Shown here piece by piece: positions 30,167 to 39,600 of a stretch of DNA of 64,000 bases (within the stretch, counting starts at the first letter, position 1; each line of letters opens with the position of its first letter). The notes under the pieces were generated by a model. It did not search any database, had not been told where the DNA came from, and saw nothing but the letters and a program-made list of their open reading frames with translations. This DNA comes from Fimbriosthenelais zetlandica (taxonomy: Eukaryota), in assembly GCA_977030845.1 (NCBI GenBank), contig OZ365115.1:4092001-4156000 (forward strand), given 5' to 3'. The translations under genes were made by a program, and so were the position numbers.

Positions 30167-33100
30167 ATGGTTGTCATCAAGAAAATCCATGCTCGTCAGA
30201 TCTTTGACAGCCGTGGTAATCCCACGGTCGAGGTCGATCTCACCACTGAAAAGGGTAGGTAAAATTTTACCAAAACATAATTAAATACATATTTTTATTC
30301 ATTAATTGCCAAATATAATTTTAAATCATTTCCACAATAAAAATTGTTGGCCTAGGCTTACTTTGGAATCAAGCACGAAAATGTGTCCAACTTATTGGAT
30401 TATCCCCTGATACTATGCTATTATATTTAACTTTTTAAGACATTTTGATTTGATTTTCTAGGTCTTTTCCGGGCCGCTGTACCCAGTGGTGCATCCACCG
30501 GTATTTATGAAGCCCTAGAGATGAGGGACGGTGGTAAAACTTACCACGGCAAAGGTGTGTCTAATGCTGTAGGCAACATCAACAACACCATCGCCCCAGC
30601 CCTTGTAGGAAAGGTGAGTAATTATTTCTCCTACTTTTTTTTTTCATAAAATATAGAAAAAATTAGAACAAGTATAGTACCGGTACTATTCCTGAATTTC
30701 CATTAAATAATCTGTTATTTCTTTATTCTGCCAGGAAATTGACATCACTGACCAGTCTGCTGTTGACAAAATTATGCTGGACTTGGATGGAACTGAGAAC
30801 AAATGTAAGAGAAAATTTACATTTATTTGATAATTTTTATTATAATAACTATATATGCTCTATGTCTCGCAAAATGCAAGTGAAATATTTTACATGCATT
30901 GCATATGTCCACTAATATAAGGCCTAATACTATATAATTTGATGATTTTTGTTGAATGTAAATATGTCATTGTCATCATAACACATCGATTCAAATGTCA
31001 TTTGTAATATCAGTCTTGGATATTATGTATCTTTTACTATTTCTTACAGCTAAACTTGGTGCCAACGCTATTCTCGGTGTGTCCTTGGCTGTCTGTAAGG
31101 CTGGGGCCGCCCACAAAGGCGTCCCACTCTACCGCCATATCGCTGACCTGGCTGGTAACAAAGATGTCATCATGCCAGTCCCAGCATTCAACGTTATCAA
31201 CGGTGGCAGCCATGCTGGTAACAAACTGGCCATGCAGGAGTTCATGATCCTCCCCACTGGTATGTTCAGCTAAATGTGAAAACTTAATTTCGTTTTGTAT
31301 ACTAATATCCAATATTGACTGAATAGAAATTGCAAGATCTCTTATATTGATGTGAAATTCAGATAGATATGTTAACAATATAATTATTAAGGTTAACTTT
31401 TATTTCAAACCATTATATTTCAGGTGCTGCTAACTTCAGTGAGGCTATGCGTATGGGTACTGAGATCTACCATCACCTGAAAAAGGTTATTAAGGAGAAG
31501 TATGGACAGGACGCCTGCAATGTAGGGGATGAGGGAGGCTTCGCTCCCAACATTCTTGACAATTTTGAAGGTAAGAATAAATAATATCAAGAGTCCTAAA
31601 CTAGTACAGAAATTCAGAGTAATTTCATTTTTCTGAATTAAAAATATCAATTAAATATTTCGTTTTTTTCAAGGGCTCGAGCTGTTGAAGGTTGCCATTG
31701 AAAAGGCTGGCTACACTGGCAAGATCGAGATTGGTATGGATGTCGCTGCATCTGAGTTCTGTAAGGAAGGATTTAAATACGATCTTGACTTCAAGAACCC
31801 CAACTCTGACCCCACTAAATGGGTAAGTAGTGATACTTTTCTGTCACTTTTTGCTTTGTAACTGGTCCTATTGTGCGACAGTGGAGTTGGTGCTCACTCT
31901 TGACAGCTAGTTAGTTAAAGTTAGAGTGAGTTACAATTTTGCCTTTACCTGTGATAAGATATAAGAATGAGTGGTCTTGACATTCGAAATTATGTTGGAG
32001 TGGAAGAGAGCACTTGGGAATGATAAGATACTGATAGTGTATACATCTACTTCTTAGCCCAACAATAAGGCGGAAATCATCCAGTTCCAGTTAAATACAA
32101 GCTAGTGTTGTGGTATAAATTTCTTTGACCACTTTTGTCCTACTAATGACGCACTTCTTTAATTTCTCTAATAAATTATTTAAAGAAGTTGCTAAGTAGC
32201 CGTGGTACCTAATGTGGCATGACTACCTTGTTACTAAGGAGCTATGAAACGCCCAGGTACCTAAGGATGGTTGCCATGGTAACAGTAGCTATGGTTACCT
32301 GTGTCCTGGCATCCTCCTCCAGGGGTGCCAGGTGATGGAGTGAGTAGTCTGGGATGGGGGGTGGCGGGGGGGTCTTGCTCCTATGCTATAAATAAGTCTA
32401 TACAGACCTTGGAACAGACAGACAGTGGTAGATTTAAGATTTAAACTTTCACATTATTTATGATGATTATCCATGGCTAAATTATAAACATGCAACTTAG
32501 CATAATTAGTCTAATATTCAGTTGAGCCGCCGGCCCATCCCCCCTTCGTTATGTACATGTACATACCATGTGTACCGTTCACCTTGTAGAATGGAAGGGC
32601 AAATGATAGACTGTCTGGCTCTCTCAGAACCCACTTGTTCAGTCTGACAAGTAGGACTGAAGCAATTTTCAAAATATTCTCGTGTCCTCTATTTGGCAAA
32701 TAATCTTATAAATCAAACGATATTATTAAAGATGCATTTAGATTTTGATTCAAATTAATTTAATTTAATATATTTATTCGTTAAAACTTTAATTTCTTGG
32801 AAAAATTGGACTGGGTGCTGGCTGGTAGGCAGAGATTTGTTGCTCTTAAATAAAAAAGACAGCCCTTACCGTTTGAAATATGAAGCCAGGGGAACTATTC
32901 ATCGCTCCCCTTTGGACTCAGTTGGTCAGTGAAGAGTCAAGGGGAGAGATTAATAGCTCTTCTGATACACATTTTACGGGAGCTTAGAGGAGTCAGAGCG
33001 ATCGCTCCCCTCAAACGGCAAGCGCTGAAAAGTATGATATATAAAGGTAGGCCAGGACTAGGCAGGTGACATTGACCTGACAGGTGAAGGTGAGAGGGAG

Positions 33101-36683: not shown

Positions 36684-39600
36684 CTCTGAGCTACGTTGAG
36701 AAAGTCCATGCTCGTCAGATCTTTGATAGCCGTGGTAACCCTACTGTTGAAGTAGATCTCACTACTGACAAGGGTATGTCATTTTTCCGATGCTATCTTT
36801 TTTTAAATTTGTCTTTTTAAAATTTATGGTATGTACATGTATACAGATTAGGAGTGTGACTAGGCTCATGGGCCAAAACCGTTCGTGATATTCAGAGATG
36901 TCTATATATTATTGTCACCAGAACCACTTGCCATTCTGCTGATCTAATTAATTGTTGTGTATTTTGGAAAGGACATGATCTAAGGTTGAAAAATACCTTT
37001 GATAATACCCTTAAATGAGATTGGTAGACAATATGGAGTTAATTCAGGAGTATGCTCTTTCCTAGGTCTTTTCCGGGCCGCTGTACCCAGTGGTGCATCC
37101 ACCGGTATTTATGAAGCCCTAGAGATGAGGGACGGTGGTAAAACTTTCCACGGCAAAGGTGTGTCTAATGCTGTAGGCAACATCAACAACACCATCGCCC
37201 CAGCCCTTGTAGGAAAGGTGAGTGACATAGAGCTCTATCTTAAGGTGCTGGCGTCACTGGGATTTTCTTACTAAAGCCTGGAGCACATTAATCCAATTTT
37301 CTATCCGGGTCCATCTGATAACTTTCCACAACTATATTTCTATTCACACCAAATGTTTGTAATTTGAACAGACCTAATCATTGGATGCCAGTGGAGGCTT
37401 TATACGGGAAAACTAGTCAAGAGAAATGTACTTCCCGAATCAAAGGTATGATGTTTTTTTTTATTTCAGTCCTTCGATCTGAGAAACCAGGAAGCAATCG
37501 ATAAGATGATGCTTGATCTTGATGCAACTGAAAATAAGTGTAAGTATGATATTTCATTTATTTCTGAGTTGCTTCCTATGGAATACTAGGTGGTTATCTG
37601 CAGCTTGTAAAAGGTTAATTTAGTCATGAACCCACAATAACCTCAACTTGTTCTTATATTACAGCTAAACTTGGTGCAAATGCCATTCTTGGAGTTTCAT
37701 TGGCTGTCTGCAAAGCGGGTGCAGCCCAAAAGGTAGGCCCCAGCCTTCCTCCATAAGACGATTGTGTGAATAATTCTTTCTCATTTTTTTTTATCATTAA
37801 TTATCTCCTAGATATATTCAGCAACAAAATGTTCTCAATGTTTCTTGTTAATCTAGAGTGTCCCACTCTACCGCCATATCGCTGACCTGGCTGGTAAAAA
37901 AGATGTCATCATGCCAGTCCCAGCATTCAACGTCATCAACGGTGGCAGCCATGCCGGTAACAGACTGGCCATGCAGGAGTTCATGATCCTCCCCACTGGT
38001 ATGTTCAGCTAAATGTGAAAACTTAATTTCGTTTTGTATACAGGTACTAATAACCAATATTGACTGAATATTTGGTTTGGTTCTGTATTTTGGTTCTGTA
38101 ATTTTTTAAATGGTATAAGTTTAATTATTCCTTTTCTTGTTTCTTTTATTTCAAACCATTGTATTTCAGGTGCTGCTAACTTCAGTGAGGCTATGCGTAT
38201 GGGTACTGAGATCTACCATCACCTGAAAAAGGTTATTAAGGAGAAGTATGGACAGGACGCCTGCAATGTAGGGGATGAGGGAGGCTTCGCTCCCAACATC
38301 CAAAACAACTTCGAAGGTATGTTATACACAAATATAATTTTCAGATGAATTTAGTTTACCTGAGTAAGCATCAGATTTGGCACACTTTGCAGCTTTAGGT
38401 TTTAACACTATGTGAATACTTTTCTTGTAATTCTAGCATAATTGTAATATGAACTGAAGACAAAATGTGAGTGAGATATTCTTTTATCGTCTCAGGACTA
38501 GAACTGGTTCGTATTGCCATTGAAAAGGCTGGCTACACTGGCAAGATCGAGATTGGTATGGATGTCGCTGCATCTGAGTTTTGTAAGGAAGGATTTAAAT
38601 ACGACCTTGACTTCAAGAATCCAAAGTCGGAGCCAGGACACTGGGTAAGTCATTCTCCCTAATGCAGACATGAATGTATGATAACAGTTTTAACATAAAA
38701 GAGTTATCTCTTTAATTGCTGCTTGGATTTCTCTTGCCTGGAGTATTGCATCTTAAATGGATGTATGATGTATGTATGTACTTTTTTATCAAGTTGAGCT
38801 CCGACCAGCTCTTTGCCGTCTACAAAGAGTTCTGTGAGAAGTACCCGGTTGTATCTATTGAGGATGCCTTTGACCAGGATGACTGGGAAGCATGGACCAA
38901 AATGAATGGCAATGTCAACATTCAGTTGGTGGGGTAGGTTTAATTCTTCAATAAAATTAATTCATGTACTTCTGGTAAAATATCCACTACCTTCGATCAG
39001 TTATAACAGGTAGTGGATGGAGATAGCCCCTAATCGACCAAGTGAGAAAGTAAAATATCCACTACCTTCGATCAATTATAACAGGTAGTGGAGGGAGATA
39101 GCCTTATATTCGACCAAGTGAGAAAGTAAAATATCCACGACCAAACTCCCAAGTTTTACTCATAACTTTTCAACATGGTACCCATTGCCTTAAATATTAC
39201 AGGGATGATTTGTTGGTGACAAACCCCAAGCGTGTCCAGACCGGTATTGACAAGAAGGCTTGTAACTGCCTCCTGCTCAAAGTGAACCAGATCGGCTCAG
39301 TGACTGAGAGCATCAAGGCCTGTAAGATGTCCCAGGACGCTGGCTGGGGTGTCATGGTCTCCCACAGATCTGGAGAAACTGAGGACTGCTTCATTGCTGA
39401 CCTCGTGGTCGGTCTCTGCACTGGACAGGTAAGATATATTTTTTCTTTGAAATGTGACCTGAAAGCTTTGTACACAAGCTATTTATTTCTCTTAGCATTT
39501 TCGTATTAAAACAAGTATATACAATGGTTTTACTATTTCTGTGAGTAAAACTGAGAAACTTTGAACTTTGTGTGTAATGCCCCCTCAAGATTTTTTAATT

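Follow-up and report, generated by a model that had tools for sequence, protein, structure and literature searches.

Here, we describe two tandem enolase units, A (unit 1) and B (unit 2), on contig OZ365115.1 of Fimbriosthenelais zetlandica (assembly GCA_977030845.1), found in a window of 64,000 nucleotides (nt; forward-strand positions 4,092,001 to 4,156,000 of the contig, with positions below counted from the first letter of the window). The two units form a mosaic in which some exons are nearly identical, exon 2 differing at one of 152 nt and exon 8 at three of 226, and others, namely the first, the 70-nt and the last exon, have drifted to saturation at silent sites. These are probably old tandem duplicates which have been exchanging sequence by recurrent, DNA-templated ectopic gene conversion, with tracts limited by the length of homology that is free of introns.

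Both units show AG/GT at every exon border and an open frame (Table 1), and an extra intron of B (37733-37856) divides the 210-nt exon of A into 68 + 142 nt. Their exon 2 pieces matched Enolase_N (PF03952) with 60-62 bits (Pfam cut-off 35) and their exon 8 pieces Enolase_C (PF00113) with 130 bits (Pfam cut-off 21.5), and the best database matches of the unit A product were annelid enolases, with 85% identity to Capitella enolase P0012. Like usual members of this family, A and B are full-length and intact and carry the conserved motifs; they differ from them in being two tandem units, the second of which has no ATG of its own and begins with its first exon at a strong phase-1 acceptor. A search of the whole assembly (447 Mb, 79 contigs) found exons 2 and 8 only at these two places, so there is no third copy that might have acted as a donor. 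The locus is the only enolase found in this genome, and the whole glycolytic enolase supply of the worm therefore comes from this mosaic pair. Intron 6 measures 1711 nt in A (31823-33533) versus 149 nt in B (38645-38793), and the extra DNA in A may be an insertion.

Table 1. Positions (in the window) of the two enolase units, their exons, putative conversion tracts and junction, with silent-site difference (pS) between A and B per exon, and block lengths in nt (pS) in this genome and in Capitella teleta
Feature	Unit A or junction	Unit B	Strand	pS, A vs B	Blocks here	Blocks in Capitella	Remarks
Enolase unit A (unit 1)	30167-34423		+				9 exons, product 437 amino acids, intact
Enolase unit B (unit 2)		36684-39872	+				10 exons, intact
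Exon 1	30167-30254	36684-36773	+	0.52	88 (0.52)	88 (0.74)	
Exon 2	30462-30613	37066-37217	+	0.00	152 (0.00)	96 (0.37), 59 (0.33)	
Exon 3	30735-30804	37470-37539	+	saturated	70 (1.06)	70 (0.82)	unconverted, 70 nt; also unconverted in Capitella (pS 0.82)
Exon 4	31050-31259	37665-37732, 37857-37998	+	0.31	68 (0.71), 142 (0.09)	68 (0.65), 142 (0.15)	two exons in B
Exon 5	31424-31570	38170-38316	+	0.12	147 (0.12)	90 (0.77), 57 (0.72)	
Exon 6	31674-31822	38496-38644	+	0.34	149 (0.34)	146 (0.21)	
Exon 7	33534-33673	38794-38933	+	0.44	140 (0.44)	366 (0.11), with exon 8	
Exon 8	33852-34077	39203-39428	+	0.04	226 (0.04)	see exon 7	
Exon 9 (last, stop included)	34292-34423	39747-39872	+	0.91	123 (0.91)	123 (0.42)	unconverted
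First 68 nt of A exon 4	31050-31117	37665-37732	+	0.71			unconverted; nonsynonymous difference (pN) 0.02
Putative tract, exon 2	30458-30619	37062-37223	+				162 nt, 1 mismatch (Tyr/Phe codon)
Putative tract, 142-nt part of exon 4 into intron 4	31121-31302	37860-38041	+				182 nt, 4 mismatches; ~30 nt more beyond a 6-nt indel
Putative tract, last ~27 nt of intron 4 and most of exon 5	31397-31553	38143-38299	+				157 nt, 1 mismatch
Putative tract, exon 6 core	31692-31797	38514-38619	+				106 nt, 2 mismatches; exon ends diverged
Putative tract, exon 7 core	33558-33652	38818-38912	+				95 nt, 2 mismatches; exon ends diverged
Putative tract, exon 8	33853-34079	39204-39430	+				227 nt, 2 mismatches
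GC-type donor CAG/GCAAGTAG	34413-34423		+				overlaps the Gly-Lys-stop tail of A; exon would end at 34415, phase 1
Inter-unit spacer	34424-36683		+				2260 nt; would be an intron on splicing from the GC donor to acceptor 36683/36684

The counts for exons 2 and 8 had already been given in a first-pass annotation of this DNA and were reproduced here, as were its description of the 70-nt exon 3 as highly diverged (60% identity between A and B) and its finding that, among the 26 codons opening the last exon, 19 differ, all of them synonymously, with 26/26 amino acids identical. The longest identical run in this part of the last exon is 8 nt, and the 26 codons include a stretch of the catalytic core. 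In the aligned coding sequence (CDS) of 1299 nt, the longest identical runs reach 165, 116, and 107 nt, lengths that were attained in 0 of 20,000 permutations of the 150 differences (p < 5e-5); where degenerate codons encode the same amino acid in both units, stretches of 52, 51, and 38 such codons lack any silent change (permutation p <= 1.5e-4). By this identical-stretch test, which follows the GENECONV criterion suggested in the annotation, the runs shared by A and B are longer than expected from their overall density of differences.

The introns present a different picture, as seven of the eight comparable A/B pairs align no better than shuffled sequence (z < 2.6), in keeping with the earlier remark that most of them do not align. 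The sole pair aligning above shuffled sequence is intron 4 (31260-31423 versus 37999-38169; z = 28). At its 5' end the first 43 nt are identical without a gap and the homology extends over ~72 nt with one 6-nt indel and one mismatch, ~29 nt at its 3' end are near-identical, and the ~65-nt middle cannot be aligned. A tract running into this intron, with both intron ends alike, had thus been correctly recognised, but its length of ~42 nt was an underestimate. Since two tracts include intron 4 sequence, one on either side, the template is DNA. A spliced transcript of one unit, serving directly or as complementary DNA (cDNA) for the repair of the other, could not have supplied these intron bases, and eight introns persist at the borders of converted exons, although a cDNA tract crossing a junction would delete them. 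Such an RNA-derived template would suit the identity in exons 2 and 8, which ends within 2-6 nt of both splice sites, as well as the absence of the same introns from both units of a species (detailed below), a footprint to be expected of cDNA-mediated loss; homology-limited DNA conversion, however, explains the stops at exon borders equally well. We therefore regard repair from a spliced template as a very unlikely source of the mosaic, while it could have contributed to the intron losses.

The same tandem enolase pair was found on one contig of Capitella teleta, for which the unit 1 CDS is exact from its database protein and the unit 2 CDS was obtained by protein-guided splice alignment. Against either Capitella unit, exons 2 and 8 of our worm show a pS of 0.60-0.70 (0.67-0.70 for exon 2), and exons 2, 5, and 8 together have values of 0.00-0.12 between A and B against 0.60-0.92 to Capitella. 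Because exons 2 and 8 differ at 60-70% of their silent sites between the species, a constraint on these sites by splicing enhancers, mRNA structure or codon bias, acting without conversion, cannot explain the identity of A and B. In favour of such a constraint are the high expression of enolase and the GC content at third codon positions (GC3), which peaks in exon 8 in both units (0.69 and 0.68); exon 2, however, has an average GC3 (0.49), and intron bases lie inside two of the tracts, so that the chance of this explanation is practically negligible.

Between Capitella's own two units, pS in exon 8 is 0.04. Exon 8 has thus been homogenised independently in a second lineage, and this is seen in an independent assembly. 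Of the informative sites, 169 support the grouping of A with B and of the two Capitella units with each other, the other two possible groupings being supported by 16 and 11; at the amino acid level, 25 sites show the species-specific pattern versus one with the unit-specific pattern and two with the remaining one. These 25 residues, common to both units of a species, are scattered across the whole protein. They are difficult to reconcile with an assembly or polishing artefact, in which reads of one unit would have corrected the other or the consensus would have collapsed where the exons are most alike. It speaks for such an error that the near-identical patches measure no more than 150-230 nt. 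Against it, every patch keeps one to four private differences, reads would not mis-map between true copies with the divergence of the adjacent exons, the older Capitella assembly is alike in exon 8, and the locus occurs once among the 79 contigs with no collapsed third copy. An artefact is thus extremely unlikely.

Trees of the separate block classes, which had been proposed as a check, gave a clear answer for the converted part and a weaker one for the rest. With the converted blocks (667 nt), A and B formed a clade with support of 100/100 and the two Capitella units one with 86/87, and a clade of B with Capitella unit 2 was rejected by the approximately unbiased (AU) test (p-AU 7e-9). With the unconverted blocks (355 nt), B grouped with Capitella unit 2 against six unit-1 sequences of different species (84/85), in agreement with the site patterns of exons 1, 3, and 9, which favour unit orthology 12 to 3. 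The whole-protein tree places A and B together (99/98). The expected grouping by species was hence found for the converted blocks and, weakly, the grouping by unit for the others, where the AU test was not decisive. As the sequence signal for unit orthology in these short blocks is weak, the age of the duplication rests on structural characters. In both species, unit 1 ends with AG/GCAAGT (the slash marking the exon end) overlapping the codons for Gly-Lys-stop, unit 2 starts from a phase-1 acceptor with no ATG, and the intron between the 68- and 142-nt exons is kept in unit 2 and lost from unit 1. From the single-copy worms Ridgeia and Paralvinella, an ancestral exon series of 85, 96, 59, 70, 68, 142, 90, 57, 146, 140, 226, and 126 nt was read, and Paralvinella, Ridgeia, and Dimorphilus, which were used for the ancestral intron set only, each have one enolase unit within 10 kb on either side. 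An independent origin of the shared structural features in two lineages is very unlikely, and since the two-unit layout is common to both species, the duplication is older than the split between this worm and Capitella. The annotation's view of an old duplication with recent, patchy conversion was supported by this layout together with the grouping by species and the contrast between a pS of 0.00 and 0.04 in exons 2 and 8 and of 0.60-0.70 to Capitella, the recency of the events being inferred.

A likely limit on homogenisation is seen when the alignment is cut at every intron present in either copy and the length of each resulting block is compared with its pS (Table 1). The Spearman correlation of length with pS is -0.88 (p 8e-4) in this genome, -0.62 (p 0.04) in Capitella, and -0.72 for the pooled blocks (p 2e-4). 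It persists as a partial correlation of -0.68 (p 7.5e-4, both species pooled) given the cross-species pN, taken as a proxy of protein constraint, and protein constraint in turn does not significantly predict pS given block length (p 0.15). Blocks of at least 140 nt are converted and those of at most 96 nt are not. The two species differ in where their introns lie, and the homogenised regions differ with them: the exon-5 region is one 147-nt block here (pS 0.12) and is divided into 90 + 57 nt in Capitella (pS 0.75), both halves being saturated; the exon-2 region measures 152 nt here (pS 0.00) and 96 + 59 nt in Capitella (pS 0.35); and exons 7 and 8 are one 366-nt block in Capitella (pS 0.11). 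Within our worm, the tract in the continuous 210-nt exon of A starts exactly at the position of B's extra intron. The annotation had proposed that conversion is confined mostly to exons of the catalytic core. This is not well supported, as intron-free homology length is the better predictor and the catalytic-core part of the last exon is unconverted.

These relations suggest a simple mechanism. Where introns have diverged beyond alignment, strand invasion or annealing would be possible only via exon homology, which selection at the protein level would hold at ~75-85%, and each tract would stay within one homology block that no intron of A or B interrupts. The longer blocks, from ~140 nt upwards (152, 142, 147, 149, 140, and 226 nt), would be overwritten repeatedly, and at present their identity is 96-99%, in the cores if not throughout, while those of ~96 nt or less (88, 70, and 68 nt) would fall below the usable homology length and have drifted to silent-site saturation. 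The last exon, of ~125 nt, also escaped; it has a divergent tail with unit-specific signals, and selection may add to its escape. An edge effect, in which tracts need anchorage inside the block, would account for the divergence at the ends of exons 6 and 7.

Alternatively, conversion might act on all parts of the units, with purifying or diversifying selection removing converted copies wherever A and B have specialised, namely at the N-terminus, in the 70-nt exon, at both ends of the 149-nt exon and at the C-terminus. The annotation had suggested that these segments may be protected in this way. At the two gene ends this is plausible. They are functionally distinct, unit 1 having an ATG and a donor motif that is invariant in six species and unit 2 an acceptor and an ordinary stop of its own, and these contrasts of ATG with acceptor and of donor plus stop with plain stop would give a concrete reason for the first and last exons of the two units to stay different if A and B form one transcription unit (see below). 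Specialisation also agrees with the lack of conversion of exons 1 and 3 in either species, with a lead of 6 to 2 for the unit-specific site pattern in exon 3, and with the grouping of the unconverted blocks by unit. Elsewhere, block length is the better predictor and protection is not well supported. The 68-nt block and the first 26 codons of the last exon are unconverted with almost nothing to protect; a unit-specific pattern is found at one amino acid site against 25 species-specific ones; protein constraint is no predictor once length is controlled; the exon-5 region is converted here and not in Capitella, following an intron and not a protein difference; and pN/pS is well below 1 in the variable blocks. 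As the main cause of the mosaic, selection against convertants is therefore weakened and unlikely.

Several points weigh against conversion limited by homology length and should be considered together. The length test comprises 21 blocks of two species, and length is partly confounded with gene position, blocks at the ends of the gene being short or bearing signals specific to their unit. In exons 6 and 7 (149 and 140 nt), conversion reached no further than the cores, and the last block of 123-129 nt behaves differently in the two species (pS 0.91 versus 0.42), so that the length threshold must be a soft one. The AU test on the unconverted blocks does not reject a clade of A and B (p 0.57), the Capitella unit-2 CDS is our own splice model, and the near-identity of A and B is known from the assembly alone, plus the parallel pattern in the independent Capitella assembly. 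A single-exon cDNA template would leave exons 2 and 8 looking the same. GC3, considered as a mark of biased conversion, shows no consistent trend across the exons. With regard to base composition, the two copies of the last exon (34292-34369 versus 39747-39824) use for the same amino acids mostly G/C-ending codons in A and mostly A/T-ending codons in B (GC3 0.63 versus 0.37); a similar asymmetry is seen in exon 1 (0.59 in A versus 0.41 in B), and the reverse in exon 7.

Introns have also been lost in concert. Compared with the ancestral series, neither unit of our worm has the introns between the 96- and 59-nt and between the 90- and 57-nt exons; in Capitella, both introns are retained in unit 2 and the latter in unit 1 as well. 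The intron between the 140- and 226-nt exons is absent from both Capitella units (L008 11027-11392 and 17726-18091) and present in both units of our worm. Given the old duplication, each shared loss needs either two parallel losses or one loss copied across by conversion. In each species, the blocks produced by these fusions (152 and 147 nt here, 366 nt in Capitella) count among those with the strongest homogenisation. This hints at a feedback between conversion and the loss of introns, without proving it: conversion would carry an intron loss from one unit to the other, and the longer block resulting from the fusion would make further conversion easier and be homogenised fastest.

The junction of the two units provides a further peculiarity. 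The AG/GCAAGT motif at the end of unit A is invariant in six unit-1 sequences of different species, including at otherwise free third positions, and splicing from 34415/34416 (phase 1) to the acceptor 36683/36684 (phase 1), which lies in the stretch 36644-36690, would give an open frame of 872 codons, encoding 871 amino acids. Capitella shows the same arrangement of donor and acceptor (L008 11560-11577 and 16300-16320), and P0124, a 900-residue protein from a marine transcript catalogue, has 78% identity over 869 amino acids with the same type of junction. On this basis, A and B probably form one transcription unit. Transcripts of four relatives read through the donor to the stop, which means that single-unit mRNAs also exist. 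If the two units are translated into one chain via the conserved GC-AG splice, conversion would be intragenic and would maintain the similarity between both halves of a covalent enolase dimer. The public gene model of Capitella unit 2 (445 amino acids; L008 16289-18270) has its start at an ATG whose frame differs from that of the following enolase exon and probably misses the splice from unit 1.

The multi-unit enolases P0001, P0003, P0004, P0005, P0016, and P0121-P0123 were considered as kin of the fused reading and rejected, as their sequence group is another one (REILDSRGNP type, in one case with at least three units) and uninformative on this locus. Two- and three-unit enolases occur in marine transcript collections in unrelated groups (P0121, P0122, P0123, P0004, P0127, and P0128), with halves that are 80-92% identical and, in some, a linker of ~80 residues. 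Outside the enolase locus, the window contains a run of 139 N at 46558-46696, representing a gap or masked sequence.

Our literature search found no report of tandem enolase units in annelids or of their conversion. The pair offers a clean, replicated example of how the placement of introns can determine what remains identical and what diverges in duplicated genes, with no difference in protein function being needed. Caution is accordingly advisable in reading variable segments that look protected as evidence of selection, and also in enolase phylogenies, where such pairs mimic independent recent duplications.

Gene conversion between duplicates is textbook biology, which the finding does not alter; the present case stands out by tracts limited to exons, by a relation to block length that is replicated in a second species, and by intron losses in concert. 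The closest parallels are old mammalian gene pairs with mosaic concerted evolution, namely BMP8A/B, DDX19A/B, and TUBG1/2 (PMC2720389). They resemble the enolase pair in that the duplication is older than the compared species, with some exons evolving in concert and others diverged, and in having been detected, as here, by GENECONV-type tests and separate trees per exon class. In the mammalian pairs, however, the tracts span exons together with the intervening introns and GC3 is raised, whereas the enolase tracts end close to exon borders or directly at them, alignment fails for seven of eight introns, GC3 gives no signal, and the pair is probably part of one transcription unit. For the tandem ATP1A1 paralogues of Leptodactylus frogs, the preprint abstract (bioRxiv 10.1101/2020.08.04.234435) describes ongoing gene conversion that opposes divergence and stresses an adaptive division of labour, one paralogue having evolved resistance to toad toxins. 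Our enolase units differ in having almost no conserved unit-specific amino acids, and escape from conversion is predicted by block length. The length dependence itself agrees with that of recombination in general, as conversion declines steeply once uninterrupted homology is shorter than a minimal length, and also with divergence; a minimal efficient processing segment of ~200 bp has been reported from yeast and from rodent cells (PMC3924818). Reporter experiments yielded those values; the threshold seen here (~96-140 nt) is derived from natural exon blocks in two worms and is correlative only. We suggest tentatively that the locus may serve as a natural test of how much homology germ-line conversion requires in a spiralian (roughly 100-140 nt), possibly with a feedback loop between conversion and intron loss.

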